Sequence record: NC_042098.1
DNA length: 64,000 nt
Reading direction: 5' to 3' (one strand)
Below, piece by piece: positions 5,020 through 51,756 of the stretch. A program made the translations under genes and the position numbers. Each line of letters starts with the position of its first letter. The stretch's first letter is position 1. The notes under the pieces are model-generated. The model saw only the letters and a list, made by a program, of their open reading frames with translations, ran no database searches and was not told where the DNA came from.

Positions 5020-5047
5020 GAGGAGGGGCAGCCCTCCTCTTATGCCG
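5020..5047 (+). terminator. Hairpin + TTATGCCG element
   Basis: GAGGAGGG-gcag-CCCTCCTC followed by TTATGCCG (5040-5047). Confidence 0.7.
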
Positions 5048-5059
5048 TTTGGGGGTAGC

Positions 5060-5284
5060 ATGGCAAAAAAGGAACTCACGATGAAGCGACTTCAGATAGA
5101 CATCTCTGAACAGGGCTTTAGCAAACTCAATGCACTCAAGGTGAAAATGGAAACCACCGCCATGGGTAGCGTTGTCAGCCGCGCCTTATCGATTACCGAT
5201 CGTTTGTTCACCGCCAAGGAAAAAGGCAGTAAGATCCTGATCGTGGATAAAGACGGCAACGTCACCGAAATCGAATTACTGTAG
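5060..5284 (+). CDS. Ribbon-helix-helix (CopG-like) DNA-binding protein
   Basis: RLQIDISEQGFSKLNALK...GSVVSRAL fits a beta-strand + two-helix pattern. The track start at 5042 is the ATG inside TTATGCCG and is probably spurious. Confidence 0.6.
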   Translation: MAKKELTMKRLQIDISEQGFSKLNALKVKMETTAMGSVVSRALSITDRLFTAKEKGSKILIVDKDGNVTEIELL

Positions 5285-5292
5285 AGGTTAAC

Positions 5293-5520
5293 ATGGCTTG
5301 GTCTAAACGCCGTGCAAAGAAACGCATTATTCATCTACGCGGTTTTCATTATCGGGTTGAATCACGCAGTATCGCAATCTGGGAGCAGTATCGCGAATAT
5401 CATCAGCATCGCCCGCTTGGATCTGGCATTGGTCTGTTAATGTTACTTGATCCTGAAACTGGTAAACCAATCGGAGCATCCAATGGCCTTAAGCAAAACA
5501 AAAATAAAGCGTCGTACTAA
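5293..5520 (+). CDS. Small basic hypothetical protein
   Basis: GAGGT SD; N-terminus MAWSKRRAKKR. Confidence 0.65.
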   Translation: MAWSKRRAKKRIIHLRGFHYRVESRSIAIWEQYREYHQHRPLGSGIGLLMLLDPETGKPIGASNGLKQNKNKASY

Positions 5521-5767
5521 CGCGTACCATAACTACAAAACGCTGGTTGAACGCATTAGCTATAAATGCATGATAGCGCACATCGATGCTCAGGGCATCA
5601 AGCTTGAAATGAACCGCACGGGTTCGTCAATTAAAAGCGAAGACGTCCCTGCTGCAAACGAAGCCCGTCTTGCATTGAAACGTGAAATCGTCCGTCTGCG
5701 AAATATCCAGGGCCGGCGTCGTATCGTGAACGCCGGTAAGATCAAAGCGGCAATCAGCCAGTATTAA
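5483..5767 (+). CDS. Small basic hypothetical protein
   Basis: GGAG SD before the ATG at 5483 (MALSKTKIKRR). Confidence 0.65.
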   Translation: MALSKTKIKRRTNAYHNYKTLVERISYKCMIAHIDAQGIKLEMNRTGSSIKSEDVPAANEARLALKREIVRLRNIQGRRRIVNAGKIKAAISQY

Positions 5768-5770
5768 TAG

Positions 5771-5799
5771 AAGGGGTTTCGGCCCCTTTATTTTTTTTT
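5771..5799 (+). terminator. Intrinsic terminator
   Basis: AAGGGG-t-ttcg-g-CCCCTT followed by a T-tract. Confidence 0.85.
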
Positions 5800-11493: not shown

Positions 11494-11524
11494 AGAGGAG
11501 GGTGAAAACCCTCCTCTTGTGCCG
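11494..11524 (+). terminator. Hairpin + TTGTGCCG (variant element)
   Basis: AGAGGAGGG-tgaaaa-CCCTCCTCT followed by TGTGCCG. A CAGCATAA copy lies at 11461. Confidence 0.6.
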
Positions 11525-12280: not shown

Positions 12281-12316
12281 GCTGGATGCGGTAAACCCGC
12301 TCCAGCCCTTATGCCG
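12281..12316 (+). terminator. Hairpin + TTATGCCG element
   Basis: GCTGGA-t-GCGG-taaac-CCGC-TCCAGC, then CC-TTATGCCG (12309-12316). Confidence 0.7.
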
Positions 12317-17120: not shown

Positions 17121-17153
17121 CGGCATAAGGAGAGGCTACGGCCTCTCCTCTTT
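17121..17153. terminator. Bidirectional hairpin with CGGCATAA (TTATGCCG on minus strand)
   Basis: CGGCATAA-GGAGAGGC-tacg-GCCTCTCC-tcttt, between convergent genes. Confidence 0.75.
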
Positions 17154-17494: not shown

Positions 17495-17518
17495 ATGCGT
17501 AAATACCTATACTTGTTT

Positions 17519-17531
17519 AAGCCTATATTAT
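17519..17531 (+). promoter_or_regulatory. Candidate early promoter for nvRNAP beta gene
   Basis: AAGCCTATATTAT, 34 nt upstream of the ATG at 17565. Confidence 0.55.
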
Positions 17532-17564
17532 CTCTTGGCAGTTAGGTTGATAAAAGGAATCATA

Positions 17565-23947: not shown

Positions 23948-23948
23948 T

Positions 23949-38248: not shown

Positions 38249-38257
38249 GAGGTTTAG

Positions 38258-38623: not shown

Positions 38624-38636
38624 AGGAGATACCCGC

Positions 38637-39029
38637 ATGGGAGTTTCTACTGCTGCTGCTCGTCGTTCTAAAGAAGGGGTGTTTACCCGGAGTATTGAAG
38701 TGCGTCATGATCACTGGAAACGGGATATCACTGATTTAGGACTGGATGTCCATAACCTGGTGCTGTGTAAGCAGGAGATCGTGTCAGTGACCCTCACTGC
38801 CTGGCGGGCGTATGACGAGTGCGGTGTATTGCGCGGCAGTGCCAAAGAGTTGAAGTTAGACATTACGGAATGGTTCCTCGGTGACAAAGGCCCGGTCATT
38901 AATGATGCGATCAAACCTCTCACGTTTGCCTTCATCATTAATCAACAACGCAGCCAACGCACGCCCTGGGTAAAAGATGTCCGCTTAGGGCTTAACCTGT
39001 CCATTGTCTACAAGAGGATTCAGCAATAA
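38637..39029 (+). CDS. Tandem paralog array member 3
   Basis: AAGGAG SD; VSVTLTAWRAYD..G.LRG. Confidence 0.65.
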   Translation: MGVSTAAARRSKEGVFTRSIEVRHDHWKRDITDLGLDVHNLVLCKQEIVSVTLTAWRAYDECGVLRGSAKELKLDITEWFLGDKGPVINDAIKPLTFAFIINQQRSQRTPWVKDVRLGLNLSIVYKRIQQ

Positions 39030-39373
39030 TGGAAATTGTCCACCAACTCGATCTTAGCCACGGCTGGGAACCCTTCAACCGCCTGAAAGCCGCCTTTGCC
39101 AAGAAACCCCCGGAGGCGATCCACATCACTGCCTGGGTCGCTCATGGCTATAAAGGAAACCTCATCGGCGATGAGCAAGTGGTGAAAGGGTCGTGCCAGG
39201 AGTGTCGGATTGATGTGACCCACATCTTCTTTCCCAGTCGGCCTGAGATCTTGATTGGTTTGTCGAGCTTCATTAACGCCATTAATCGTGACGGGCCGGT
39301 GAAGATCCCGGCCTGGACCGGATCGATTACTCTTTGTCTTGAATTAGCGATAAGTTATACAGATAGAATTTAA
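39029..39373 (+). CDS. Tandem paralog array member 4
   Basis: TAATG-coupled; IHITAW......G.LIGDE. Confidence 0.6.
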   Translation: MEIVHQLDLSHGWEPFNRLKAAFAKKPPEAIHITAWVAHGYKGNLIGDEQVVKGSCQECRIDVTHIFFPSRPEILIGLSSFINAINRDGPVKIPAWTGSITLCLELAISYTDRI

Positions 39374-39480
39374 TCGGCATATATTCTGTCTCGTTAGCGT
39401 AAGCTCGCTAAAAACCCTTTTAAAGTTTTGTATAACAAACTATCAACTTTGTAGAAAGAAACAAATAGGAAATTAATCTC

Positions 39481-40191
39481 ATGTTGCATGAAAACTTTGA
39501 AGCCTTAGTGGCGAACATCGCCAACCAAATCAATCAGCTGGAACCAGAGGATCTGCCGTCACTGATCCTGACCAAGAGCGAGGTCTACATCAACGACAAG
39601 CGACACGATCGCACGCGTCTACTGCTGAACCTGTTTACCCCACAACCCGGGCACACGCACGACGTGACCTTCGATCAAGAGCTGCAGGATGCTTTCGCTC
39701 ACAACAACCTGGAGTTTATCAAAGTCGGCGAGGGGATCGCCTACGGACTACTGCGTACCAGTATCGTTAACAACGAACCCGCGGTGTTCTGGATTCACGC
39801 CGATGTCTCCGATGATGCATCATTACTGAAGCAAGCCTGGGACATCATCACCGACCTGAAGAAGAATGCGGGTTACCCCCAGGCGTTTAACATTGACGTG
39901 CTCGACGTAAGCTGGCATGCGTTAAGCTGGGCACAACTGCTGGGGACTTTGCTTGACCGCACTGACCCGACCCGCCGGTTCCGTTTGGCAACTAACCCCG
40001 ATTACGATTTTGTGTTATCCCAGAAAGCCATCACGTACTACCAGGAGACGTTGAGTAAACGTCCGATGGCACCGGTTGCTTACCTCGATGACACTAACCT
40101 GTTTAATGGTGGCGACTTTAACGACAGTGATCGCAACTGGGCAATCGCCCCGAACGACAGCACCCGCCCTATCGTGAAGGTGTATGTTTAA
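39481..40191 (+). CDS. Hypothetical protein
   Basis: AGGA SD; 236 aa. Confidence 0.75.
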   Translation: MLHENFEALVANIANQINQLEPEDLPSLILTKSEVYINDKRHDRTRLLLNLFTPQPGHTHDVTFDQELQDAFAHNNLEFIKVGEGIAYGLLRTSIVNNEPAVFWIHADVSDDASLLKQAWDIITDLKKNAGYPQAFNIDVLDVSWHALSWAQLLGTLLDRTDPTRRFRLATNPDYDFVLSQKAITYYQETLSKRPMAPVAYLDDTNLFNGGDFNDSDRNWAIAPNDSTRPIVKVYV

Positions 40192-40249
40192 ATAAACACA
40201 AGCTCCAGATGGTATACTTGGAAACATTTATTGATCTGGAGCCCCAATC

Positions 40250-40549
40250 ATGCAAAACAATGACGATGTGGTGCCGATGCACTATAACCACAACGTGGAC
40301 ATGAACAACCCGCTCGACGTGGATGAAGAGGCGTTAAAGGTTCGCTTCGCCGCGCGCCTGTGCAGCTTCCTTGATCTTGCCGAGCAACTGAATAAGGATG
40401 ACTTAACCCAAAACGATATCAGTCAGTTCACCGTCGGTATCGTAAACTTAGTGTGTGACTCAATGGGCAGTAGTCCCAAACGAGACCTTTACAGGAGACA
40501 GATGGTTGACAAACTTGAACCTGTTCTGTCGAGGCATCTGATTAAATAG
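40250..40549 (+). CDS. Hypothetical protein
   Basis: GGAG SD; 99 aa. Confidence 0.7.
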   Translation: MQNNDDVVPMHYNHNVDMNNPLDVDEEALKVRFAARLCSFLDLAEQLNKDDLTQNDISQFTVGIVNLVCDSMGSSPKRDLYRRQMVDKLEPVLSRHLIK

Positions 40550-40593
40550 TCGGAGGCGTGACGGAACGCGACTACATTGCAGTATAAAAGGAT

Positions 40594-41376
40594 ATGGCTA
40601 TGACGTTCGAAAAAGAAGGGGACACGTTGCACATTGTGCGACTGAGAACCAAAGGCTGGTACCACATGACGGTAACCAGCGATCCTGATGCGAGTATGGA
40701 TATCGTTAACACGAACTTACGTCAGGGCACTTTTACTGATCCACTTTTACAACACCAGTACGACATCTGTAAAAAAGAGATGGGGCAAGATCCCAATCCA
40801 AATGACATCGTTTTCCACCAGTTCGTGACCACGCCAGACCAGACCGGGTATCAGTCTGGCCACTGGATGATTCGTGATCACATTCGCCACGGCTATTCAC
40901 TGAAGTGCCTGACTAACATCGGTGACTGGCTTTCAACCGCAGCCTATCTTTATATCCCAGACCCTGATGATAAAGAGGGTGGTGAGAGAAAATACAAAGT
41001 AACTGACTTAGGTAAGTATCTCGACAAGGAAGAGTTGTTGGGTCACTCCGACCACCTGCCGATGTATTTCTTGCCTGATGAGGAACCGGGTGACAGCTAT
41101 GATGAGTTGATTGAAACCCATCGTCTTCCGCAACCTGACAAAGGTTACTCTTGTGTGGCCATCAAGAACGGTATGTCGTTTAGTTTGCTGACGTACAACA
41201 ACTCCAAGCGGGTGCTTTCAGAAGAGGAAGAACTGCAAACCACAACCGTCCCAGTCAGGGCAGATGGTTTGCTGTACAGCTCCGTCTTAGAGTTGGCTAT
41301 GGCTAAGAACGCCCCAGTCTGGTTTGTCTTGGAGATGCTAACCTCCGAAACCGACCCAAACTGGCATTTCGTCTAA
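40594..41376 (+). CDS. Homing-endonuclease-derived protein, paralog B
   Basis: TNIGDWL...VTD..KYL shared with the ORF at 36329. C-terminal DG..YSSV.E.A......W NUMOD1-like domain. Confidence 0.55.
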   Translation: MAMTFEKEGDTLHIVRLRTKGWYHMTVTSDPDASMDIVNTNLRQGTFTDPLLQHQYDICKKEMGQDPNPNDIVFHQFVTTPDQTGYQSGHWMIRDHIRHGYSLKCLTNIGDWLSTAAYLYIPDPDDKEGGERKYKVTDLGKYLDKEELLGHSDHLPMYFLPDEEPGDSYDELIETHRLPQPDKGYSCVAIKNGMSFSLLTYNNSKRVLSEEEELQTTTVPVRADGLLYSSVLELAMAKNAPVWFVLEMLTSETDPNWHFV

Positions 41377-41464
41377 CCGAGATTGGCTGTGGGGAATCCT
41401 ATGCAATTGCAAAGTGTAGAGAGAACCACGGCCAATCGTAAGCTGTATCATAAGGAGAGAGATT

Positions 41465-43045
41465 GTGAGTGAAGCTAACCAGAACATCGTAGAAAGCTAC
41501 GACGACCTGCCGAAGAACGCGCAGAAAGGTGATCGCTATACCGTGCGTGAAGACGCGATCGTTTACGAACTCCAGGAAGATGGTTCTTGGAAAGACGTAG
41601 ACATCAACGAACAGGTTGATCAGGAAAACGAAGAGCAGGCGCAGACCGAAGATGGTCAGCAGTCTGACACCGGCGCAACTGATCAACCTGCCTCTGATGA
41701 AGAGGGCGATGCTGATTCGTCTAAAACTGCAGCTACCGATGAAGAAGACCAGGTAGATGACAACGGCGATGACAAGCAGACTCCGGCTGAAGAGAAGCAG
41801 GAAGAAGCAGCGCAGGCGGTTGATGAAACCCAACCACGTGATGACCCTTACGTACGAGGAGCGAACAGCGATGCCAATCCGGCACAACCTGAAGATGCGA
41901 ATCAAACGCAAGATCAGACTGACGAAGCAGGACAAACTCCTGATTCTTCTGACGATACCAACGCGCAGCAGGAAAGCACTGATGGCGTTGCGACGCAGGA
42001 TGCGAAAGAGCAGGCTAACATCCCGGAAGGGGTAGATCCTGAAGAAGCGCAACCTGACAACCAGCCACTGGCAGTAGCGCCGGTTGAACAACCCCCTGTC
42101 CAGCACGAAGCGGTCGCGGTTGATCCTAACGCTGACCAACCATCACCTGAAGCGCGTCCAGACAGCAAGATCGAAGAAGCAGCTGAACTGAACGCACAGA
42201 AAGAAGATGCGGCTCGTGATGAGATCGCTGAAGCCGGTGCCGATGCGCAAGCTGCGACCTCTGCTGAGCAGACTGACGCTGGCAAAGCCAAAGAAGACGC
42301 ACAGGCTGAAGGCCAGTTGCCGAACGATGGCGCTGCTGATGATGTCGCCGCTGGTAAACCACGTAATGACCAGACCTACACCGAAGATCAGAAAGCAGCG
42401 AACACGCCAGCTCCTGAAATCGTGCAGGCTCAGGAAAACCATACGTCAGAGCCTGATCCGGTAGTCAGCCAGGAAGAGACCCATGTGCAGAATGCCACGG
42501 ACCCTGACCAGCCGACTATTATCCCGCAGGAAGCGAAGTCTGAATCACTGGCGCATCAAGCTGCTGATCCAACGCAGGAAACTGTGTTTGTTAAGCAGGA
42601 TGAAAACCTGGACCCGGAAGTGCGCGTACTGCAACAGCGCATTGAAGAGTACATCGGCAACATGGGTGTGAACGGTAAGCACGATCGCCGTGACGGTCCG
42701 AAGTATCAGGCTCGCCTGTACAAAGACCTGCACTCCATCATGGCGCTGGAGCCAGTGAAGTTCAAGCAAGTGATGGACTACCTGCTGAACCGTGTGTATG
42801 AAGAACGTGCCGGTGCTTTCTCCGACACCTATACGCGCCGTTACTTCGATCAGCTGTCACCGATGCACATGCAGACCGATCGCGTGCGTGAGTTTGACAA
42901 CATCCTGTCGCTGGTAACCACTGTGGGTCATTCCAAAAACCGCAGTCGTGCCCTGCAGCAGGTTGATCTGCAACGCGCCCTGAAGAACATTCAGGATGCC
43001 GGTAAGCAGCAGCGTATGGCAGCGTACTTTGATGCTCTGCGTTAA
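41465..43045 (+). CDS. Highly acidic protein with long D/E/Q/A disordered linker and folded C-terminal domain
   Basis: AAGGAG SD and GTG start; ~330 aa of acidic low complexity between short N- and C-terminal folded regions. Confidence 0.8.
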   Translation: MSEANQNIVESYDDLPKNAQKGDRYTVREDAIVYELQEDGSWKDVDINEQVDQENEEQAQTEDGQQSDTGATDQPASDEEGDADSSKTAATDEEDQVDDNGDDKQTPAEEKQEEAAQAVDETQPRDDPYVRGANSDANPAQPEDANQTQDQTDEAGQTPDSSDDTNAQQESTDGVATQDAKEQANIPEGVDPEEAQPDNQPLAVAPVEQPPVQHEAVAVDPNADQPSPEARPDSKIEEAAELNAQKEDAARDEIAEAGADAQAATSAEQTDAGKAKEDAQAEGQLPNDGAADDVAAGKPRNDQTYTEDQKAANTPAPEIVQAQENHTSEPDPVVSQEETHVQNATDPDQPTIIPQEAKSESLAHQAADPTQETVFVKQDENLDPEVRVLQQRIEEYIGNMGVNGKHDRRDGPKYQARLYKDLHSIMALEPVKFKQVMDYLLNRVYEERAGAFSDTYTRRYFDQLSPMHMQTDRVREFDNILSLVTTVGHSKNRSRALQQVDLQRALKNIQDAGKQQRMAAYFDALR

Positions 43046-43058
43046 TTGATCATTTGAT

Positions 43059-43110
43059 CAGCATAAGGAGAGGCCTCGCGCCTCTCCTGTTTATGCCGTC
43101 TTTTTTTTTT
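43059..43110. terminator. Bidirectional hairpin flanked by CAGCATAA and TTATGCCG
   Basis: CAGCATAA-GGAGAGGC-ctcgc-GCCTCTCCT-GT-TTATGCCG followed by a T-tract, between convergent genes. Confidence 0.8.
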
Positions 43111-43612
43111 ACACTAAAATACCGTTAAAAGCCACCGGGTCATTAGCCAGGAATGGGTTGTACCGAACCACGGACTCTAACGTGTAATCGTAATAGATGA
43201 AATCCAAGCATTGCGCACCCTGGTAGGTAGTCCATGACTTTGATAGATAACCATTGCGGTCTAACGCAACGTAAGCTGGGCGGCTTGACAACGGAGTAAA
43301 CTTCATCAACACTTGTGGCTGGTTGTTGAGGTTGTTTGTAAATACAGGCAGGGAAGGATGAGCATGCCTTGCAATGGAGCACAACCAAGAGTCGTAGGTA
43401 AACCACTCTTTATACGGTGTGCCGTACATGTTGTTGGATGTGTTCAATGTAGTATTAACATATTTACCGGCATTGGCGGACATGCTGGTACTCGCGTTCG
43501 CTACCTTTGTATATTTGGCTGTATTGGCCGCAAGCCACGCCTCGAATTGCGCATAGGTCATCTTAGTACCTATCTGTGGCTGTGACTTACTGCCCATTAA
43601 CATCTCTAACAT
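43109..43612 (-). CDS. Putative virion protein with LCCL-like domain, paralog 1
   Basis: MYGTPY..TYDS..IARHA ... AY..LDRNGY.S.SW..Y. MLEML N-terminus. Confidence 0.65.
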   Translation of the reverse strand: MLEMLMGSKSQPQIGTKMTYAQFEAWLAANTAKYTKVANASTSMSANAGKYVNTTLNTSNNMYGTPYKEWFTYDSWLCSIARHAHPSLPVFTNNLNNQPQVLMKFTPLSSRPAYVALDRNGYLSKSWTTYQGAQCLDFIYYDYTLESVVRYNPFLANDPVAFNGILV

Positions 43613-43624
43613 GGTAACTCCTGA

Positions 43625-44134
43625 TTAGATCAACACCCCGTTAAACGGTACCGGTGTGCCGCCATTTAACGGAGTCCACCGCATCACAACACCCTGGGTA
43701 TTGTCGTAGTAAATAAAGTCAAGCACAGTACGACCGTTAAATGATCCGTAAGACAAGCTGGTGTAACCGTTACGATTGAGGCCTGAATAGGCACTTTTGG
43801 TAACATAAGGTCCAAGCTTCATTAAACAAAACTGTTTATTCGCCAACATGTAATCAAACATCGTTTGTGCCGGACACGCATGTCGTGCGATCCTTGCCCA
43901 AGTTGAATCGTGAGTACAGGAGTTTAAATAGGGCGTGCCCCACATGTTACCGCCATCACCCGTCATGGAGATCCTGGCATAGCCGTTCGTAAACGTGGTG
44001 GACGAAGGGGTGCCTGTATTCGACGCTGCACTGACCGCACTGTACTTAGTGGTATTGGTATTTAACCAAGTAACAAAATCCGCATAGCTCATCTTTACAG
44101 TTTTCTTGCCAGCGTACATTAATAACTCGAGCAT
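43625..44134 (-). CDS. Putative virion protein with LCCL-like domain, paralog 2
   Basis: MWGTPY..THDS..IARHA ... AYSGLNRNGYTSLSYGSF. MLELL N-terminus. Confidence 0.65.
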   Translation of the reverse strand: MLELLMYAGKKTVKMSYADFVTWLNTNTTKYSAVSAASNTGTPSSTTFTNGYARISMTGDGGNMWGTPYLNSCTHDSTWARIARHACPAQTMFDYMLANKQFCLMKLGPYVTKSAYSGLNRNGYTSLSYGSFNGRTVLDFIYYDNTQGVVMRWTPLNGGTPVPFNGVLI

Positions 44135-44205
44135 AACTCCACCTCAAAATAAAATCCCGTTAGCAAGGGTTCTGGTTCTCTAATACATGACTTATAGGAT
44201 TTAGC

Positions 44206-44235
44206 CGGCATAACGGAGCAGGCAACGCCTACTCC
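44206..44235 (-). terminator. Hairpin + TTATGCCG element (minus strand)
   Basis: Minus strand GGAGTAGGC-gtt-GCCTGCTCC-G-TTATGCCG. Confidence 0.7.
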
Positions 44236-44275
44236 TGAATCCTGGTGTGAATAACGGTTGGTCGATTGGGGTATT

Positions 44276-45253
44276 TTAACCCGCTGTAGTTTGATCTGGG
44301 TAACCTCGACCTGTCCCCCAGACAATACGAACAATACCATCAGCACCACTACCTAACAAACTGGTGCCGTCACTCTTGTACTGACTTGCCCCGCCGCCTC
44401 CTGCGCCCCCGCCTGGAATCGCGGTAGGTATCCCCGCCCCTGATCCTGGCATATCCTTGATACGTCCTGTCGATTTAATTCCCCCGCCACCTCGACCAGT
44501 ATAGATCTTGGTAGTGCCTTGCGTCGTCAGGGTAACATTCCCGCCATAACCCGCTCCCGTATCCGCAGGGTTAGTGGGGGTTGCACCATAAGCACATCCT
44601 GTGCCGCCATCGCCCATGTAACCGCCTGCACCGCCACCGCCGACCGCACGTGTCGTTAATGACCCGGTGCCACCCTTTCCACCTGTACCACCCCCAACAA
44701 TAGGTTTGGTAGCAGGGTTCTGGATAGGGTTGTTCGCGATCCCGGCTAACACACCGCCGACGACATTTAACAGCCCGCCGACCAAACCGCCTACTAATCC
44801 CCCTACTATATCCACCAATACCAGATCCAGGAGATTACCGGAAAGTCCATTCGACTGCGGCATGACGGTAACTGCCGTGTTACCGGATGCGTCCTCCCCG
44901 CCACCCACTGCTTTTAACAGATAGGTGCCATTACGCGCTATTCCGGAGAAAGACCCTTTATTCGCTGTGAAGGCGGTTTTAACGGGTGTTGGTGTACCAA
45001 CCCCACCTTGCCCTACCACAACCGTCATCTTCTCACCAGGGGTCACAGGGATCGCATTACGGTAACGTAACGTTCCGCCATTCCCGCCGGTATGTACAAG
45101 GGTAGTGCTACTGGCTGATTGACCGCCACCTACTGCGACGGCACTCATACTTGTTGCCCCTTCTGGCACAATCAGTTCATACACCCCCGCCTTTGTGAAG
45201 AGCGTCTCCAAGGGTAACTTAATGTGTGTCTTGTTTAACAATAACCCAATCAT
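44276..45253 (-). CDS. Glycine-rich putative tail/virion protein
   Basis: VP.G...AVAVGGG, GGNGG.L.Y.N.I.VTPGE...VVVG.GG and GA.G.VRIVWG....P pattern of phage Gly-rich virion domains. Confidence 0.75.
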   Translation of the reverse strand: MIGLLLNKTHIKLPLETLFTKAGVYELIVPEGATSMSAVAVGGGQSASSTTLVHTGGNGGTLRYRNAIPVTPGEKMTVVVGQGGVGTPTPVKTAFTANKGSFSGIARNGTYLLKAVGGGEDASGNTAVTVMPQSNGLSGNLLDLVLVDIVGGLVGGLVGGLLNVVGGVLAGIANNPIQNPATKPIVGGGTGGKGGTGSLTTRAVGGGGAGGYMGDGGTGCAYGATPTNPADTGAGYGGNVTLTTQGTTKIYTGRGGGGIKSTGRIKDMPGSGAGIPTAIPGGGAGGGGASQYKSDGTSLLGSGADGIVRIVWGTGRGYPDQTTAG

Positions 45254-45310
45254 GCATCATCCTTCTAGAATGAGTACCTTGACGACCTACTCGCGTCATA
45301 GCATTCCAAC

Positions 45311-45354
45311 CGGCATAAGGGAGTGGATACCCTGACCGTAGCCAAGGCATCCAC
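45311..45354 (-). terminator. Hairpin + TTATGCCG element (minus strand) after the DNA polymerase gene
   Basis: CGGCATAA at 45311-45318, adjacent to a GTGGAT...ATCCAC stem. Confidence 0.6.
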
Positions 45355-45362
45355 GTGGTGCG

Positions 45363-47084
45363 TCAAGCCGCAGCCATGAAATCGATCTCGATATGTTTTT
45401 CTACCATGAAGTCTTTCAGTAACGTAATGGTCTCAGGTGCTTTGTACAACTTACGTGCAAGTTCACCGGCATTGTTCATACCACCGGCTGCCAGGTTAAC
45501 TGCTACCTGGCGATATTCCGTATCATCCAATCCTTCGATCTGGGTCATCTCAATCCAGGTGGTTTGTTTCCCCACATTCATGATGACCGTACCGGTCGGA
45601 TATGCCCCTTCTACGTCGATGTCGTTCGTACCTGTACGGACATAGGACTTGACGTTCGGCAGTTCTTTAAACATCGCTTTGCCGTTTAAGGCAACCAGCT
45701 CTGTTGGGAGCATAACGATCCAACCACCCAATCCCTGAATGTGATCATCCAGTTCGGTACGCATCTGATCCGATGTAGTACCCCAGATATACCCTTCTTT
45801 CATTACATCGTAATGCATCGCCTCAGCGATACGTGTCGGCTGCGATATAAAGTTACGGTAGTCTGACACCCCGCAGAACGTTGGAACCGCTACAGAGAGA
45901 TCTGAGGTCTTCTCGTCCATCATTTCAACCACGATGCAGTCGAAGATGTTATACATCACATATTCGTACTTGTAGTTGCTCTGCATGAACTCATGCCAGT
46001 CTGCCCCGTGGTACCCTTCAGCTTCACTGAACTTCATCTTGGTCACACCGAGTACTTTCTCAGCGATGTTATCCAGTTTGTAGTTCAGCTCTTTACCGTT
46101 CATGGTACGCAGGTAGTAATAGGCTGACATCGATTCAGCCCAACGGAACGACGCAGGGGCATTGACGTAAGGCCACTTCTCATAGTTAGCTAATGATGTC
46201 TTGGTGACTTCTTTGCCATCATTTTTTACTTTGTGGGTTTTGCCCTCGTAGTAATAAACGTTACGGTACTCTTGGGGTACCGAGGGATCGCAAATAACGT
46301 CAGCAGGGTTGATGCCGGCATTAGTTAATGTTTGGGTGAGAACCTTGTAGTCGAACTCGAGCACGTTCCAGCCAGTGATGAAATCGGGCATCCACTCATG
46401 GGCGCGTTCAAACAGTTTGACAAAGCCATCTGCAGCGCTGTCAACCAACACGAACTCTGGGTTGGTGATGCTGCGTTTGGTTGCCCACTCGCCCAGGTAT
46501 TTATCCCAGGCCAGTTTCAGCTTCTGATGAATACGTTCATCCGCTTCCCCGCCAAAGTAGCGACGGATCACAAAGGTAAAGGTGCGTTCTTTAAAGGTTA
46601 AGGATGCCATGATCGGCTCACCCTTATACCGCTCGTCTACCATTTCGGTTTCGATATCGAACACACTGATTTTGTACGGAGTAAAGGTATCAGGAAACTT
46701 CGCTTCGTACATCGCTTTGACAATCGAGGAGGGTTCGATGTCAGCGCCATACACGTACGGACTGCGACATACCCGACGCAGTTGCTGATCGGTGGCACCT
46801 TTTCCCAACATCTTTGAGATGTGGTTAGGAAGATCCCACTGCGGGCAACTGAACTTCTGCAGCTTGGACAGCTCTTCGTAATCTTTCTTATCCTGGTGAT
46901 TGCGGTACGCCGGTTTGGTGAGGTAGTAATCACGCTTCATGTCTTTGATGATGCGGGTGTGGGGTTTGCTGTTCCCGTTCTCGTCAATCACATTCTCTTT
47001 CACGAAGATGATGTCTGATTTGCCGCGCAGAGAAAGGGTATAGATCGCGTGCTTGCATTCGAAACGAAGGTTATTGCTGCTCAT
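45363..47084 (-). CDS. Family-B DNA polymerase, exonuclease/N-terminal half of the split phiKZ-type polymerase (gp82-like)
   Basis: ExoI FDIETE, ExoII TGWNVLEFD, ExoIII YNIFD and motif A DVEGAYP. The ORF ends before motifs B/C. Confidence 0.88.
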   Translation of the reverse strand: MSSNNLRFECKHAIYTLSLRGKSDIIFVKENVIDENGNSKPHTRIIKDMKRDYYLTKPAYRNHQDKKDYEELSKLQKFSCPQWDLPNHISKMLGKGATDQQLRRVCRSPYVYGADIEPSSIVKAMYEAKFPDTFTPYKISVFDIETEMVDERYKGEPIMASLTFKERTFTFVIRRYFGGEADERIHQKLKLAWDKYLGEWATKRSITNPEFVLVDSAADGFVKLFERAHEWMPDFITGWNVLEFDYKVLTQTLTNAGINPADVICDPSVPQEYRNVYYYEGKTHKVKNDGKEVTKTSLANYEKWPYVNAPASFRWAESMSAYYYLRTMNGKELNYKLDNIAEKVLGVTKMKFSEAEGYHGADWHEFMQSNYKYEYVMYNIFDCIVVEMMDEKTSDLSVAVPTFCGVSDYRNFISQPTRIAEAMHYDVMKEGYIWGTTSDQMRTELDDHIQGLGGWIVMLPTELVALNGKAMFKELPNVKSYVRTGTNDIDVEGAYPTGTVIMNVGKQTTWIEMTQIEGLDDTEYRQVAVNLAAGGMNNAGELARKLYKAPETITLLKDFMVEKHIEIDFMAAA

Positions 47085-47184
47085 GATGAATGATAATCCT
47101 ATGTCAAAACACTACAAAGTGCACCAGTGTTTAATACGCGTTATAACATCAGGCGTGCAACTACATTTATACAAAGGAGATCAC

Positions 47185-48447
47185 ATGATCCTATCTAGCG
47201 GTCTGGAAGCGATTAGCTTTCAAAAGAATCCGCTCTTTTACAAACAGCTGGTTGTCGAATTCGGCCGTCTGATGGAACTTGCTAAAGCCAATGGTAAGAA
47301 GCGCTTGACCGAAGAGATGATGGCGCAGTCTAACCTGGCAAAAATCACCATGGCGAACACCGGCATCAAAGTCTCGCCTGGGGTGGATACCCGCATGCAG
47401 TGTAATGCGTACGTTATGATTCCGAGCATCAACTCCTATCACGTCTTCAATGACCGCATGCGTCAGATCTTCTCAGGGTATGCCGAATCGTTTGAGCAGT
47501 TTCGTAAAGCCAACGATGTGTTGATTGGGTTGGTTGATCTGCAGAACTCCAAAGTGGGCGGGGTCTTCTCGACTATTGATCACCGCATCTGTCTGTCGTA
47601 CGATATGATGACCGACTATGACATGACCCCGGGTGAAGTCGCAGCCATTTACATGCATGAAGTCGGCCATGCCTTTACCTTCCTGGAGATGCTGCATTAT
47701 ACCGCTACCACCAACCTGGTGCTGACCGCTGGCATTGAAGCGATCATCAAATCAGAAACTTCTCGTAAGCATGTCATCTTAAGTGATATCGAAAACTCCT
47801 TAGGGATTAAGATTGATAATAAAGATGAACTGGTCGCTTACGACAAGTATGAAGATTATGCTGTCACGATCCTGTCGAAGTACAATCGCACCTTAGCTGC
47901 GGCCCTGGGTTCACCGGCACACGATGAATCGATGTCTGAGCAGATGGCAGATATGTTTGCCACCCGACATGGCGCGGGATTGGATCTGGCGCGGGGATTG
48001 TCCCGTATTCACAAATATTACAATTCACCGAAGTTTAAGTTTGCCCGCTATCTGGAGATCTTTGTCGGCATCCTGCAGACCATGGGCTTGTCCCTGGTGT
48101 TCGATGTGTTGGGAGTAATCGTTGTCCTGACTGTCGGTAACTTCTTTGGTGGGACGTATGACCGGGCGAAAGACCGTTTCATCCGCATGCGTAACGAAAT
48201 CGTGGTCGGCCTGAAAGATGAAGAGATCAGTGCAGCTGACCGCAAACTCTTGATCAGTCATATCGCCGAGCTGGACAAGATCATTGCCCAGGCCAAAAAC
48301 GAAAGCTCCTTTGTCGAGCAGTTGTCTCTGGTGGTGCGCGCCAGCCAGCGTGAGCGTTATGCCAGCAAGTACCTGCAAAAGGATCTTGAAGCCCTTCTTA
48401 ATAATCCGCTCTATGTCAGTGCGGCCAAACTGAAAACATTGCAATAA
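47185..48447 (+). CDS. Virion protein with HExxH/M48-like metallopeptidase motif (phiKZ gp84 position)
   Basis: AAGGAG SD before the ATG at 47185. N-terminal SGLE maturation site, YMHEVGH and EQMAD.FA. Confidence 0.7.
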   Translation: MILSSGLEAISFQKNPLFYKQLVVEFGRLMELAKANGKKRLTEEMMAQSNLAKITMANTGIKVSPGVDTRMQCNAYVMIPSINSYHVFNDRMRQIFSGYAESFEQFRKANDVLIGLVDLQNSKVGGVFSTIDHRICLSYDMMTDYDMTPGEVAAIYMHEVGHAFTFLEMLHYTATTNLVLTAGIEAIIKSETSRKHVILSDIENSLGIKIDNKDELVAYDKYEDYAVTILSKYNRTLAAALGSPAHDESMSEQMADMFATRHGAGLDLARGLSRIHKYYNSPKFKFARYLEIFVGILQTMGLSLVFDVLGVIVVLTVGNFFGGTYDRAKDRFIRMRNEIVVGLKDEEISAADRKLLISHIAELDKIIAQAKNESSFVEQLSLVVRASQRERYASKYLQKDLEALLNNPLYVSAAKLKTLQ

Positions 48448-48460
48448 GGATTCATCAGAA

Positions 48461-48967
48461 ATGATTATTGACGTAGCAGAATTAAAGAAACAGATCGTGT
48501 CGGTGCGTTCTATTGCAGAGATCCCAACTACCCTGCGTACTAAACTGATTGAAACCGGTCTGGCCCGTGCGGTAGCTTATGGTGTTGATCTGCCAAAAGA
48601 GCTGGTCGGCAACCCGGTCTCCTATTTCGCCAGCAACGCCACTGATGCTAAGCAGGCACTGGCGGTGATCAACGAAACCAACGTGATCAACATCTCCCGT
48701 ATCCTGTCACTCGCCACCATCATCTGGCAGGCACGCTACAACATGGTTTATCTGCCAGCCACTCGCGAGTCCATGGAGTTGACTCATCAGGTGTTGTCCG
48801 ATCAACGCGAATGGTTGTTCGATGCAGAGCAGCAGGATTTCCTGTCGGCGACCATTGGTGACGGCACGGTGCAAGACAGCCTGAAGCTGGCTCTGTTAAA
48901 CTTCACCTGCCCGGCTGTGATCAACCCTAACCAGGTAGCACCAGTCACCACCGCTGACGAGGAGTAA
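48461..48967 (+). CDS. Putative virion protein
   Basis: AAGGA SD; lies within the virion operon. Confidence 0.7.
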   Translation: MIIDVAELKKQIVSVRSIAEIPTTLRTKLIETGLARAVAYGVDLPKELVGNPVSYFASNATDAKQALAVINETNVINISRILSLATIIWQARYNMVYLPATRESMELTHQVLSDQREWLFDAEQQDFLSATIGDGTVQDSLKLALLNFTCPAVINPNQVAPVTTADEE

Positions 48968-48969
48968 TC

Positions 48970-50436
48970 ATGTCTATTGATCTGATCGCTTCCTTTATCG
49001 ACGATTCGGGCAATGTCCCGATGACGGCGCTGACCGTGGTAAAGAAAGAGAACGACGAAGCCAACGCACAACTGCCGAAACAGGTAGCGATGCTGAAAGC
49101 CTCTAACGAACGTATCGTTGAACTTCAGTCTGTGATTGAACGTGTGCGCCGTGAAGGCATGAGCCGTGAAGTCGCCGCGATTGTTGCCTCGATTGCACCC
49201 GAAGCGTTGCCGGTTGGCTACGGTGCTGAAGGTTTCACTGAGCAACCCTCAAAGCTTGGGATGGCTGCTGGTCTGGAATCGATCACCGCCTATGTGATTG
49301 ATGGTATCAAACGTCTGATCGCATTCCTGATTGATAAGGCCAAGAAAGCCGCTGCCTTTATTGTGGATCAGTATCGTCGTCTGACGGGCATTGCTCCCAC
49401 TGCGTACAAGATCGATCGGCGTGCTGCTTATCTTACGGCGATGTCTGCCCGGTTTGCTCAGCATTTCGGTACGGATCTGGCGACCCTGTTAGAGCAGGAT
49501 ATCAATGCCGGCTTTACCAGTATCGAAAGCACCCGCATGGTATTAAGCGGTATGTTTGCTGATGCGGAAGTGCTGCAGGCGGATCTGTCTAAATATGGCA
49601 AGCACATCAATGTCATGTCCAAACAGATCGAAGCGTTACTGGCAGATGCGCCAGCACGTGTGGTGCGGGTCAATGCGATTGTTAATGATGTCACGGTATC
49701 GCGCAATGGCAGCAACGATCGCAGTGCAGAGATCCTGCGTCTGATCGACACCCGTAACCTCGATGCCCTGGTCAGTACGTTGCGCAGCGTCAGTAAGTTA
49801 CTGGTCAGCAGCCCGATGTACAAATCCACTGGCACCGGTAAAGACGGCAAAATCAAACAGACTATCCTTGAGCAGTTAAACAGCGATGGTTTCCGTGAGA
49901 TGATGTCCGGCCTTTCCATGGCTGCTAATGCTGGCATGACCCACACCATGGACATGACCGATGCCTCGGCGATCATTCGTTCACGTAATCTGGCTGAGGC
50001 TGTTAAAGAGCTCACCAATTACGAAGAAGTGAAGAAGCGTTCATTGGATGACCTCAAGTCTGCTACTGGTTCGATCAACAGCAACAAATATGTGCAGGCC
50101 GCTGAACAGTCACCGGGTGATGACCCGACCATGGCAGCTGTGGTGCAGTTTAACCAATACTGGGATGATGTCACGACCGCCGTAAAAGTGGCACAGGACA
50201 TCACCACCGCCTACGCGGAGACGGTATTCAAACTGCAGCTGTTCTCGGTGCGTTGTCAAGACCTGGCGCTGGTACAGTGGTCCGCTAACCCAGCCAATGC
50301 CGGTCTGGCAGAAGCCAATGCGGCGACTGAACGTCTGCAGGCGGTGGTCAAGCAGTATCTGGATAAGGTCGTGAAGAACACCACGGGCTTGAAAGGTGCG
50401 CTGGATGACCTCGGCAAACTGGTCAATCAACTGTAA
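48970..50436 (+). CDS. Putative processed head protein
   Basis: GGAG SD; pro-region GMSREVA...GFTEQPS...AGLES. Confidence 0.7.
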   Translation: MSIDLIASFIDDSGNVPMTALTVVKKENDEANAQLPKQVAMLKASNERIVELQSVIERVRREGMSREVAAIVASIAPEALPVGYGAEGFTEQPSKLGMAAGLESITAYVIDGIKRLIAFLIDKAKKAAAFIVDQYRRLTGIAPTAYKIDRRAAYLTAMSARFAQHFGTDLATLLEQDINAGFTSIESTRMVLSGMFADAEVLQADLSKYGKHINVMSKQIEALLADAPARVVRVNAIVNDVTVSRNGSNDRSAEILRLIDTRNLDALVSTLRSVSKLLVSSPMYKSTGTGKDGKIKQTILEQLNSDGFREMMSGLSMAANAGMTHTMDMTDASAIIRSRNLAEAVKELTNYEEVKKRSLDDLKSATGSINSNKYVQAAEQSPGDDPTMAAVVQFNQYWDDVTTAVKVAQDITTAYAETVFKLQLFSVRCQDLALVQWSANPANAGLAEANAATERLQAVVKQYLDKVVKNTTGLKGALDDLGKLVNQL

Positions 50437-50445
50437 GGAAATCGC

Positions 50446-51702
50446 ATGGAATCCACATTACTTCAAACGATCAATGAAACCACGGAGTTGTGTGACTCTT
50501 TGATTTCGTTGTCACAACGTCTTGAGATGTTGGGTCCCATTGCTGCTGAGTCTGTTAACTTCGCAAAGATCCATGAATCGATTAACCTGAAGGTGGCGAA
50601 GATTGCTGCTTCGATGGAGTCGATTGAAGCTAACGGCATCAACCAGGAGGCAGTGTTAGAAATCAATACTGCCATGCCTGGTATCATTCCCAACACCATC
50701 CCTCTTAATGGATACACCAAAGCCCGCAGTCAGATGAATGTGGGGTTTGCCTTAGAGTCGTTGGAGTCAGGTAAAGCAGCAATGATCTCCGGTTCAGTAA
50801 CAGGGATCGTGGCCGTGATCGTCAAACTGTTTCGTTGGGTGGTCATGACCATCAAGCAGTATGTCAAATCACGCCGTGATGCGAACCGTCTCGGTGTCTC
50901 TGTGACACAAGCGCTGCAACGTGCGGGGACGATCAACGAATACCTGTTAGAACAGTTGGCGAAAACCCCTGAAGCCAAAGCCGCCCGTCCGGGCTTTGAA
51001 TGGTTGGTATCGATCTGGCGTCCGCAGGCTGGGATCTTTAAGTTCAATGAAGATGCACTGGTGCAGTGGTGGCCAGAGCTCGTCAATGAACTGGAGTACG
51101 AATACAACCAGATCAGCAAGGCGTTTGAAACACTGCGTGGCGGTGGGTCGTTTGTCCCGAACATTGCGAAAGCGCATCAGTCACCCTCCATGAAGCGTTT
51201 CTTTGAAGCCTTACCGCAAGGGACGGATCGTCAAGGGAATATCGTTGAGGTAGAGCTGGCGAAGAAGCAGTTCCAGGAGAACCCACAGCGTGCGTTGTTC
51301 CAACTGGCTGAGCGTCTGCGCTACATGATCATGCGTGAGCCTAAATCAAAAGGTACTGACTTTGGGCAAGAGCTGATCTCAGTAGGTCGCAGTATTGAAG
51401 CTTACACCAATGTGGATCGTCTGGTGTTTGATCAGCTGAATACCTACGACACCAACAACCGATTAGGGAAACTGGAAGAGGCGTTTGGTGCGTTGTATAA
51501 GCAAGTCCAAGCCACACGCTACACTGCAGACAAAGCCCTGGTTGATGAGTTCGTGGGTTACCTGAACCGTTATTCAGAAAAGCTTAACTGTTTCGTGCAA
51601 CTGATCACCATTGTGAGTTACCTGGATAGCTGTAGTTTCCAGATCCTTGACAATGTCTCCAAAGCCACCATGAAGTACGTTGATATTGCTGCCAGTAATT
51701 AA
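50446..51702 (+). CDS. Putative processed head protein
   Basis: AAGGA SD; pro-region ASME..GINQEA...GYT..RS...FALES. Confidence 0.7.
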   Translation: MESTLLQTINETTELCDSLISLSQRLEMLGPIAAESVNFAKIHESINLKVAKIAASMESIEANGINQEAVLEINTAMPGIIPNTIPLNGYTKARSQMNVGFALESLESGKAAMISGSVTGIVAVIVKLFRWVVMTIKQYVKSRRDANRLGVSVTQALQRAGTINEYLLEQLAKTPEAKAARPGFEWLVSIWRPQAGIFKFNEDALVQWWPELVNELEYEYNQISKAFETLRGGGSFVPNIAKAHQSPSMKRFFEALPQGTDRQGNIVEVELAKKQFQENPQRALFQLAERLRYMIMREPKSKGTDFGQELISVGRSIEAYTNVDRLVFDQLNTYDTNNRLGKLEEAFGALYKQVQATRYTADKALVDEFVGYLNRYSEKLNCFVQLITIVSYLDSCSFQILDNVSKATMKYVDIAASN

Positions 51703-51704
51703 AT

Positions 51705-51756
51705 CGGCATAAAGGCCTGGCCTTCCTTGCGGAGGGCCAGAGCCTTGCTTATGCCG
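51705..51756. terminator. Long bidirectional hairpin flanked by CGGCATAA and TTATGCCG
   Basis: CGGCATAA-AGGC-CTGGCCTTCC-ttgc-GGAGGGCCAG-a-GCCTT-GC-TTATGCCG. The right motif includes the stop codon of the convergent gene. Confidence 0.8.

Follow-up and report, generated by a model that had tools for sequence, protein, structure and literature searches.

A hairpin followed by a conserved box recurs at gene ends of Erwinia phage vB_EamM_Desertfox and resembles mapped phiKZ-type terminators

What is the function of a short motif that recurs beside hairpins at the gene ends of a large phage genome? The window analysed here, a 64-kb stretch spanning bases 186001-250000 of Erwinia phage vB_EamM_Desertfox (whole genome 272 kb, GC 50%), contains nine exact copies of TTATGCCG over both strands, at 5040+, 12309+, 17121-, 28129+, 43091+, 44206-, 45311-, 51705- and 51749+, all of them as listed in an earlier sequence-only reading. 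In 100 dinucleotide-preserving shuffles of the window the motif occurred on average 1.65 times and at most 6 times, and none of the 100 reached nine. As that reading had also noted, each copy adjoins a GC-rich hairpin at a gene end: a stable hairpin, with dG from -16 to -38 kcal/mol and z from -3.3 to -6.7 relative to shuffled sequence, ends 0-4 nt before all nine, and all nine lie outside genes by the deposited annotation, the copy at 51749 overlapping the stop codon of gp292 only. The box lies 3' of its hairpin on the transcribed strand in all five copies between same-strand genes, and the remaining four sit at three convergent junctions. The six variants that had been listed (811, 11517, 23258, 30931, 37866 and 43059) are each preceded by a hairpin, and the two convergent sites with the motif on both flanks (43059-43098 and 51705-51756) are both bidirectional elements. 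Most copies were correctly said to lack a U-tract; a scan of 36000-55999 for hairpins followed by T-runs recovered none of the motif sites there, and such structures were not enriched in that interval (20 found vs 16.2 expected).

In a 12-kb comparison, Desertfox shared 98.6% identity with RAY, a characterised nucleus-forming phage. Multisubunit RNA polymerase subunits, the presumed readers of the signal, are encoded by gp249 and gp250, which have homologues 25-33% identical in distant jumbo contigs; further phage RNA polymerase subunit genes are annotated at 1-782 and 34964-36274. The features of the window are as follows.

789-819, + strand: variant element after gp223 (RNA polymerase subunit gene); hairpin 789-810, then TTATTACCG from 811; from the sequence and annotated gene ends
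5019-5047, + strand: putative terminator, gp229/gp230; hairpin 5019-5039, box TTATGCCG 5040-5047; dG -17.7, z -3.3
11495-11524, + strand: variant element after gp241; hairpin 11495-11516, box TTGTGCCG 11517-11524; upstream fold -18.9 kcal/mol
12281-12316, + strand: putative terminator, gp243/gp244; hairpin 12281-12306, 2-nt gap, box 12309-12316; dG -16.8, z -4.3
17121-17150, - strand: putative terminator after gp247, convergent gp246 and gp247; hairpin 17129-17150, box 17128-17121; dG -18.3, z -4.2
17565-21654, + strand: gp249 and gp250, multisubunit RNA polymerase subunit genes (deposited annotation)
23232-23265, + strand: weak variant after gp251; hairpin and TTATGCTT (23258), then a T-rich tract
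28107-28136, + strand: putative terminator, gp261/gp262; hairpin 28107-28128, box 28129-28136; dG -19.3, z -3.8
30931-30970, both strands: bidirectional element, convergent gp266 and gp267; ATATGCCG (-) 30931-30938, hairpin 30939-30961, TTATGACA (+) 30963-30970, T-run
37845-37873, + strand: variant element, gp275/gp276; UUCG-loop hairpin, box TTATGCCC 37866-37873
43059-43109, both strands: bidirectional element, convergent gp283 and gp284; TTATGCTG (-) 43059-43066, hairpin 43067-43087, TTATGCCG (+) 43091-43098, T10; dG -25.6, z -5.4
44206-44235, - strand: putative terminator, gp286/gp285 (both minus); hairpin 44215-44235, box 44213-44206; dG -16.1, z -4.5
45311-45354, - strand: putative terminator, gp287 (DNA polymerase)/gp286; 14-bp hairpin 45323-45354, 4-nt gap, box 45318-45311; dG -25.4, z -4.4
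51705-51756, both strands: bidirectional element, convergent gp291 and gp292; CGGCATAA 51705-51712, hairpin 51713-51748, TTATGCCG 51749-51756; dG -37.7 / -35.1, z -6.7 / -6.6

The same arrangement holds throughout the 272-kb genome, where a count of coding against intergenic copies, suggested by the earlier reading, found 40 exact copies, 36 of them intergenic with a hairpin and three inside genes without one. Allowing one mismatch raised the number to 66 elements, under a strict hairpin test that random positions pass at 3.7%. Elements stand at 17 of 18 convergent junctions and at none of the 18 divergent (promoter) junctions (hypergeometric P ~2e-9, by hand arithmetic). Within runs of same-strand genes, 37 elements point in the direction of transcription and 4 against it (binomial P ~5e-8); three of these four are one-mismatch matches inside genes, and an exact copy at record position 11341, minus strand, opposes local transcription.

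Typically the hairpin is GC-rich, with about 9 bp and a stable tetraloop, and purines predominate in its 5' arm in 51 of the 66 elements. The conserved box, TTATGCYG, begins 0-2 nt beyond the hairpin, with the largest gap, 4 nt, at 45311; box positions 5-8 are near-invariant. The most frequent k-mers after perfect stems were TATGC (51 observed vs 1.8 expected) and TTATG (39 vs 1.9), and with a hairpin plus TTAT as the sole anchor the next four bases were GCCG 34 times and GCTG 8 times. The hairpin sequences are distinct in 64 of 66 cases.

Comparison with phage AH06, which is 80% identical to Desertfox, showed boxes kept and stems altered by compensatory substitutions. At eight orthologous sites the exact box is retained in five, and two more have a one-base variant, namely TTATGCCA in AH06 at the counterpart of the 28129 element and TTATGCCC in both phages at 37866. 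The box at 23258 is lost, and because it is not kept in AH06 the element at 23232-23265 may be an ordinary U-tract terminator. In the element at 30931-30970 the stem has undergone a compensatory C-G to T-A change with the box unchanged, at 44206 the box is retained in a strongly diverged spacer, and at 51705-51756 the stem apex (inner pairs and loop) is inverted with both boxes kept. The hairpin-box element also occurs in Goslar and in uncultivated contigs of 204-276 kb, with core genes sharing 24-43% identity with those of Desertfox. Samples of SPN3US and EL lacked the GYYG part of the box, and the box is therefore not universal among these phages.

Terminators of this form have been mapped on RNA. 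The phiKZ terminator consensus, derived from ONT-cappable-seq 3' ends, is a hairpin followed by TTATKYYGT, in full 5'-BCCYCCCCHWWDGGGRRGGBYTTATKYYGT-3'; a transcription termination site (TTS) was called only where reads fell by at least 20% across it, and ARNold classed most of the phiKZ examples as intrinsic terminators (Putzeys et al. 2024, PMC10914365). Motif A of phage 201phi2-1 is said to strongly resemble this consensus (PMC11512511). Placing the published 201phi2-1 TTS coordinates on the sequence, we found all eight to lie 8 nt past the stem, inside the box, seven at position 7 of the box, directly before the conserved G, and the eighth one base earlier, although the accuracy of ONT-cappable-seq is about 2 nt (stated for 5' ends) and the reading of position 7 could be offset (PMC11512511). 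Terminators of the same type from 201phi2-1 also stop the host RNA polymerase, as assayed with a reporter trap in uninfected cells (PMC11512511).

From the observed anatomy, distribution, orientation and conservation, and from the match to mapped terminators, we infer, by homology and distribution, that the element is probably the standard transcription terminator of Desertfox, the Agricanvirus form of the phiKZ-type terminator; it is a solid signal, but largely a known one. The earlier proposal that a hairpin with UUAUGCCG marks termination for the phage machinery thus gains support from the genome-wide distribution and from the mapped phiKZ and 201phi2-1 sites. Its description of the signal as phage-specific is too strong, as the 201phi2-1 versions stop host RNA polymerase; their activity in uninfected hosts means that no phage factor is needed, at least in the reporter setting.

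Desertfox RNAs would then end at these elements by hairpin-dependent termination, with the transcribed box standing in for the normal U-tract. If Desertfox behaves as 201phi2-1 does, the RNA end would fall 7-8 nt past the stem, at box position 7, giving the tail UUAUGCC-3' and leaving the conserved G8 as the next, unincorporated base. The polymerase may be held there for long enough by the pyrimidine/G step together with GC-rich DNA in its active site, and the weakness of the UUAU stretch of RNA:DNA hybrid beside the stem may let the completed hairpin pull the transcript out. As the DNA of this nucleus-forming jumbo phage is enclosed in the phage nucleus and infection of the phiKZ type makes no use of the host RNA polymerase, the readers in vivo would be the phage multisubunit RNA polymerases. 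Between convergent genes a single hairpin would serve both directions, and there the two boxes, CGGCATAA and TTATGCCG, pair and lengthen the stem, as they do at 51705-51756.

The weak-hybrid model alone gives no account of the conservation of GCCG in particular. A phage protein might instead recognise UUAUGCCG, in nascent RNA or DNA, by the hairpin and cause termination, or might bind the finished 3' end, the hairpin alone being insufficient for phage polymerases. Conservation of the box far exceeds what a weak hybrid needs and persists across phages whose RNA polymerase beta-like subunit is just 26% identical, and the 201phi2-1 authors raised antitermination factors as a possibility (PMC11512511). 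We nevertheless consider such a factor unlikely, given the 201phi2-1 activity without any phage protein, the canonical 8-nt distance between stem and 3' end and the intrinsic class of most phiKZ examples. Somewhat less probable again is an RNA-processing or 3'-end protection mark, in which polymerases pass the site, the RNA is cut or trimmed back to the box by a nuclease, and the hairpin confers stability on the mRNA. Mapped 3' ends alone cannot separate termination from processing, a 3'-terminal hairpin guards against 3' exonucleases, and every mature mRNA would have the same tail; but exonucleolytic trimming normally leaves fewer than 8 nt beyond the stem base, and a single fixed position in eight of eight cases would not result from it, downstream reporter expression was reduced in the 201phi2-1 trap, and the published sites needed a read drop.

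The earlier suggestion that some sites couple termination with re-initiation, the non-virion RNA polymerase restarting transcription of the next gene at the TATG of the box, is not supported, and we regard it as very improbable. It draws on the phiKZ late promoter, whose core is TATG, with the start at G and the non-template strand read by a pocket of gp123 (Yakunina 2015, PMC4666361; de Martin Garrido 2026, PMC12809450); the orthologue in Desertfox is gp2, identical at 7 of 14 named pocket residues in an alignment read by eye, and five copies in the window have a same-strand gene 21-134 nt downstream. However, the element is equally regular at convergent junctions, where nothing lies downstream, and is absent from divergent ones, which must hold promoters. 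TATGs in promoter regions stand in AT-rich contexts (aTATGt, as in phiKZ P119L), never as TATGCC, and phiKZ promoter strength is dominated by flanks, chiefly downstream of TATG, whereas the TATG of the Desertfox box is clamped by the GC-rich stem and CCG. The many intergenic copies and the few near-identical bidirectional ones (record positions 27539/27570, 155805/155836 and 253032/253063) would also fit a dispersed repeat of mobile or recombination type (REP- or MITE-like), or a protein-binding site in the DNA with no link to transcription. This class of explanation has a negligible chance: it is effectively refuted by orientation that tracks transcription, by hairpin diversity and by compensatory stem change around a fixed box, and divergent spacers of similar or larger size lack the element.

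Among known systems, the class II pause/termination signal of T7 RNA polymerase resembles the Desertfox box in being a short conserved sequence and not a U-tract. The T7 signal is hairpin-independent and serves a single-subunit polymerase, whereas the Desertfox element never lacks its hairpin, whose evolution shows selection for pairing. With canonical intrinsic (rho-independent) terminators the element shares a GC-rich hairpin, a weak rU:dA-rich hybrid by the stem, frequent bidirectional use and, in 201phi2-1, release about 8 nt past the stem; these terminators have a U-tract of 7-9 nt, whereas Desertfox has only 3 U in the 8 nt past the stem and a conserved GCC at the predicted RNA 3' end. 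We take its nearest relatives there to be terminators whose distal U-tract is imperfect and for which forward translocation is the proposed mode of action. In phiKZ as in Desertfox, a GC-rich stem-loop runs straight into TTAT and then K-Y-Y-G-(T), a pattern that TTATGCCG(T) matches exactly. Each of the two phages has its own multisubunit RNA polymerases, and each carries the element at the 3' end of the transcription unit, with bidirectional copies where genes converge; TTATG after hairpins is enriched in a 40-kb piece of phiKZ as well (12 observed vs 0.6 expected). The box is more constrained in Desertfox, with G at position 5, C at 6 and mostly C at 7, whereas TTATGT or TTATT is frequent in phiKZ, and the GC content of the sampled phiKZ piece is 38%. 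The phiKZ terminators were mapped on RNA and those of 201phi2-1 assayed in a host reporter trap, whereas the Desertfox elements are identified from sequence. Stem polarity is reversed, the 5' arm being C-rich in phiKZ (with a G-rich 3' arm) and in 201phi2-1, so the elements are not simply the same sequence. In 201phi2-1 an additional T usually separates the stem from the box. Exact TTATGCCG copies follow hairpins in that phage, with RNA 3' ends mapping within the box, and in its motif A/B combination an upstream complement pairs with the box to elongate the stem (PMC11512511), just as at 43059-43098 and 51705-51756 in Desertfox.

The element, a GC-rich hairpin followed on its 3' side by a box with the consensus TTATGCYG, is represented by the exact 8-mer TTATGCCG at exactly the nine places in the window where the sequence-only reading had found it, against a mean of 1.65 copies and a maximum of 6 in the shuffled window. 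A stable hairpin does adjoin every copy, as that reading had it, ending 0–4 nt upstream in all nine cases, and the sites fold at dG −16 to −38 kcal/mol with z-scores of −3.3 to −6.7. The deposited annotation likewise places all nine at gene ends and outside genes, and the claim that the box lies 3' of the hairpin on the transcribed strand is true for all five copies between same-strand genes, the remaining four being at three convergent junctions; hairpins also precede each of the six variant sites proposed in the same reading.

The window comprises bases 186001–250000 of the record, and a 12-kb piece of it matches Erwinia phage vB_EamM_Desertfox (MG655268.1, genus Agricanvirus) at 100% identity, Ea35-70, RAY and their relatives at 98–99%, and Erwinia phage AH06 at approximately 80%. 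RAY, whose identity to Desertfox over the compared 12 kb is 98.6%, has been characterised experimentally as a nucleus-forming phage, a chimallivirus (PMC10299810). The Desertfox annotation includes several beta/beta' subunit genes for multisubunit RNA polymerases (RNAPs) of the phiKZ type, and the orthologue of phiKZ gp123 is Desertfox gp2 (26% identity, E 3e-52), so that the element is carried by a chimallivirus with phiKZ-like virion and non-virion multisubunit RNAPs. Rfam gave no match within the window.

The rest of the record was fetched as annotated pieces, which were analysed separately, and the comparison of coding with intergenic copies that the sequence-only reading had proposed as a check came out in its favor. 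The genome holds 40 exact copies of TTATGCCG against about 7 expected (scaled from the window shuffles), 36 of them intergenic with a hairpin directly upstream, three gene-internal without a hairpin, and one a second copy just 3' of a CTATGCCG element. For a strict census, sites were required to have at most one mismatch in the box, a hairpin of dG ≤ −12 and no more than 3 nt between stem and box; 3.7% of random positions pass this hairpin test, the first cut-off (dG ≤ −9) having let through 14% before it was tightened. Of the 66 elements in the strict census, 34 match the box exactly and 32 differ from it at one position; false hits should make up about 7 of the total. A hairpin-first census allowing G-U pairs and one mismatch, in which stems ran into the box and 15 of approximately 36 exact sites were recovered, was replaced by this motif-first scan and by a test of k-mers after perfect stems.

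Where transcription units converge terminators are needed and promoters are not, and where they diverge the reverse holds. The element is present at 17 of the 18 convergent junctions, on both strands at 8, and the single convergent junction without it has no spacer; at the 18 divergent junctions it does not occur at all (hypergeometric P about 2e-9, by our own arithmetic). Within tandem regions 37 elements are oriented with transcription and 4 against it, three of the latter being gene-internal hits with one mismatch. The element thus sits at 3' ends, points with transcription and serves both strands between convergent genes, and its placement at convergent but not divergent junctions identifies it as a 3'-end signal and not a promoter. 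One exact hairpin-associated copy opposing local transcription, at record position 11341 on the minus strand between gp7 and gp8 (both plus), might be an antisense transcription stop or the remnant of a bidirectional terminator. At the 5' end of annotated gp299 (window 61499–61549, record 247499–247549), about 40–90 nt inside the coding sequence, a strong hairpin is followed by CTATACCG and then by TTGTGCCC and a T-run, which could be an internal attenuator, a sign of a mis-called start, or chance.

The 66 elements are uniform in construction. The stem, of 9.4 bp on average and closed mainly by stable tetraloops (GAAA, TTCG, AAAC, GTTT), abuts the box directly in 40 cases and is separated from it by 1 nt in 15, 2 nt in 9 and 3 nt in 2. 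Counts at the eight box positions are T59 T63 A65 T66 G63 C65 C58 G57, and pyrimidines follow at positions 10–11. When only a hairpin and TTAT are taken as the anchor, the next four bases are GCCG in 34 cases and GCTG in 8, followed by other GCYN, and an unbiased test of k-mers after perfect stems ranks TATGC at the top (51 observed, 1.8 expected), with TTATG and ATGCC. Purines predominate in the 5' arm of 51 of the 66 (for example GGAGAGG and GAGGAGG) and pyrimidines in the 3' arm, a strong polarity seen across the genome, at the following window sites among others.

Elements with strong arm polarity
window 5019–5039, purine-rich 5' arm and pyrimidine-rich 3' arm
window 17129–17150, the same polarity
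window 43067–43087, the same polarity

Since 64 of the 66 hairpins are distinct sequences, the element is not a copied repeat. Three near-identical bidirectional terminators at convergent junctions, of the form AGCATAA-GGAGAGGGC-loop-GCCCTCTCC-TCTATGCCG, suggest that whole terminator cassettes are occasionally copied.

Near-identical bidirectional terminators
record 27539–27577, both strands (piece L003)
record 155805–155843, both strands (piece L006)
record 253032–253070, both strands (piece L007)

Alignment of eight window sites to their AH06 orthologues showed that the exact box is retained at five. At site 28129 AH06 carries the one-base variant TTATGCCA, at 37866 the one-base variant TTATGCCC is shared by both phages, and at 44206 the box is intact despite a heavily diverged spacer. 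At 30931 T-A replaces a C-G pair in the stem, the box being unchanged, and at 51749 the stem apex (inner pairs and loop) is inverted in AH06 with pairing preserved. Such compensatory changes, together with the diversity of the hairpins, effectively rule out a dispersed repeat of the REP or MITE kind. The weak variant at 23258 has lost its box in AH06 and has a T-rich tract instead. What stands at the ends of transcription units is a hairpin selected for pairing, joined to a fixed box.

The sequence-only reading had also held, correctly, that most copies have no U-tract: a scan of window 36000–55999 for hairpins with a T-run recovers none of the motif sites; hairpins followed by at least 5 T in 8 bases show no excess there (20 found, 16.2 expected). 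Only 8 of 310 post-hairpin flanks, two for each of 155 perfect stems, begin with 8 bases that include 6 T or more, and the element does not have the 7–9 nt U-rich tract directly after the stem that characterizes a canonical intrinsic terminator. A T-run occurs in only 7 of the 66 elements, mainly plus-strand copies at convergent junctions, where it is located after the box; in these seven the box is paired with its upstream complement, giving a long stem and then a true U-tract. Within the same 36000–55999 interval, sigma-70-type promoter-like sites are scarce (10, against 20.2 with sd 4.4 in shuffles), in keeping with a genome that the host RNA polymerase does not transcribe.

Terminators of closely similar design have been mapped in two other phages. 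ONT-cappable-seq of phiKZ located 133 termination sites; in most of the predicted intrinsic terminators a stem-loop precedes TTAT, and the consensus reads BCCYCCCCHWWDGGGRRGGBYTTATKYYGT (PMC10914365). The 201phi2-1 motif 'strongly resembles' that consensus, motif combinations lengthen its stem, and a reporter trap in uninfected cells of P. chlororaphis showed eight terminators of this type to be active (PMC11512511). The Desertfox element has both the GC-rich stem-loop and the TTAT-K-Y-Y-G(-T) box, TTATGCCG(T) being an exact fit to TTATKYYGT; its arms differ, since those of phiKZ and 201phi2-1 run CCYCCCC...GGGRRGG, the reverse of the purine-rich 5' arm of Desertfox. When the literature was searched for the 8-mer, the only hits were primer sequences. 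The termination mark postulated from sequence is therefore borne out both by the distribution over junctions and orientations and by the match to these two phages. We read the sequence at the eight termination sites (TTS) whose coordinates are printed in the 201phi2-1 text (PMC11512511); all eight sit 8 nt after the stem and inside the box, and seven of them fall on box position 7, the base preceding the conserved G.

TTS contexts in 201phi2-1, with the mapped base in brackets
TTATGC[C]G, position 7 (two sites)
TTATGA[C]G, position 7
TTATGT[T]G, position 7
TTATGC[T]G, position 7
TTATAC[C]G, position 7
ATATGT[T]G, position 7
TATATG[C]CG, one base earlier

The box is thus transcribed, leaving an RNA tail UUAUGYY-3' with G as the next base, and the RNA end appears to lie at one fixed position before the conserved G.

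As TATG is also the core of the phiKZ late promoter, the sequence-only reading had allowed that some copies couple termination to re-initiation. Such coupling is unsupported, the element being absent from every divergent junction and present where there is no downstream gene. A late promoter of the phiKZ type, with the G of TATG at +1, would be expected upstream of late genes, where promoters have to be, and in an AT-rich, easily melted context; the element is missing from the divergent junctions, and its TATG is flanked by the GC-rich stem and CCG. The TATG found in divergent spacers of Desertfox (CATA on the minus strand) occurs in AT-rich contexts such as aTATGt and tTATGa, never as TATGCC, and these contexts resemble the phiKZ P119L promoter cTATGtag. 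In phiKZ, a pocket of gp123 binds the TATG of the late promoter core in the non-template strand (PMC12809450). By our reading of the alignment, which is uncertain near gaps, Desertfox gp2 shares 7 of the 14 named pocket residues and has conservative changes at 3 more, against 26% identity overall, and Desertfox probably uses TATG promoters too. At termination, however, the mapped 3' ends put the TATG of the box at about −6 to −3, and not at the promoter register of −3 to +1, so that a non-template TATG held in that register is made unlikely by all eight ends, which lie three bases further on. With the pocket also reported as incomplete in the transcribing complex (PMC12809450), dual use of TATG becomes a possibility of low probability.

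Two features of the divergent spacers may be regarded as candidate promoter elements, namely CCTA(T/C)ATTATC, which recurs upstream of plus-strand genes, and TATG in AT-rich context 30–60 nt upstream of starts; genome-wide, CTAYATTA is not enriched (23 copies, where a random 8-mer with one two-fold position would give roughly 17).

Examples of divergent spacers with these features
window 17495–17564
record 117361–117425
record 158698–158777

Beyond these phages, a post-hairpin TTATG(C/T) is enriched in Desertfox, 201phi2-1, phiKZ and Goslar, and no such enrichment was found in the sampled SPN3US (where TTATT/TTTAT occurs), EL, AR9 and T4; the EL sample has no enriched post-hairpin word. Viral contigs were scanned with a 15-mer consisting of a common 3' arm and the box, which gave 82 stretches, a number that could arise by chance alone in a collection of that size, and 80 were analysed; the count was restricted to the 27 loci that have a proper hairpin and to the large contigs similar at the protein level. 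At least nine contigs of 204–276 kb, without DNA similarity to Desertfox, carry the element with the same purine-rich 5' arm, and their RNAP, helicase and DNA polymerase genes are 24–43% identical to those of Desertfox. The stem polarity of Desertfox is thus common to distant uncultivated relatives.

Infection by phages of the phiKZ type is independent of the host RNA polymerase (PMC4666361; review PMC12908238), and as the phage DNA lies inside the phage nucleus, the in vivo readers of the element are the phage enzymes; the activity of 201phi2-1 terminators in the reporter trap shows that a phage factor is not strictly required. By homology with 201phi2-1, Desertfox RNA would be released 7–8 nt after the stem. 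From what is generally known of multisubunit RNAPs, the rU:dA-rich portion of the hybrid beside the stem may let the hairpin extract the transcript, the pyrimidine at −1 and G at +1 would resemble the consensus elemental pause, and the GC-rich downstream duplex would tend to keep the enzyme at one position. It is conceivable, if improbable, that the box does more than substitute for a U-tract and is a sequence-specific signal with a meaning peculiar to nucleus-forming phages, either through direct reading by the phage multisubunit RNAPs (for example by capture of non-template TATG in the pocket during elongation) or through a role as a tag for mRNA stability or for export from the phage nucleus (for example via ChmC, an RNA-binding protein). 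Positions 5–8 are conserved far beyond the needs of a weak hybrid and the box survives approximately 25% RNAP-subunit identity and a flipped stem polarity, which speak for such readings, but the SPN3US and EL samples, which have no GYYG part, speak against both. Were the first correct, one short word would serve initiation and termination; were the second, nearly every phage mRNA would carry a hairpin-UUAUGCC tail.

Read as a terminator, the element provides a rule that marks the ends of transcription units in Agricanvirus and in many uncultivated jumbo phage genomes, where it is useful because ordinary terminator finders fail. It also flags probable errors in gene starts where an ATG within the box was annotated as the start. 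The box ATG is the annotated start codon of gp56 (record 49541) and gp61 (record 53058), and as these starts lie inside a terminator and at gp56 a better GGAGGGG and ATG are found 19 nt downstream, both were probably mis-called. At window 5042 the box ATG is in frame with the next gene (ORF 5042–5284; gp230 is annotated at 5081). In the same annotation, gp224, gp225 and gp226 (window 834–2778) are adjacent weak paralogues (26–28% identity, E 1e-8 to 2e-12 by BLASTP), no pairwise similarity was seen by BLASTP at E 1e-3 within gp244–246 or gp297–299, runs of similar size that were also suspected to be tandem paralogues, and the deposited sequence has a single N at record 118481 (position 18481 of piece L005).

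For engineering, such elements offer compact, strong terminators, and a terminator box kept across deeply diverged phages (26% identity in a core RNAP subunit) provides a clean system for studying how sigma-less phage multisubunit RNAPs terminate without a U-tract. A further question is whether the shared mRNA 3' tail plays any part once transcription has ended; a recent review of these phages does not discuss termination and lists selection for mRNA export as open (PMC12908238). Several points appear to be unstated in the literature searched, namely that the stem polarity is reversed, that the box is tighter (GCCG), that the RNA ends at a fixed place ahead of the conserved G, that the SPN3US and EL samples lack GYYG, and that the element has spread among uncultivated relatives. 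These are extensions and not a new kind of system, for the element is the Agricanvirus member of the terminator class described in phiKZ and 201phi2-1.
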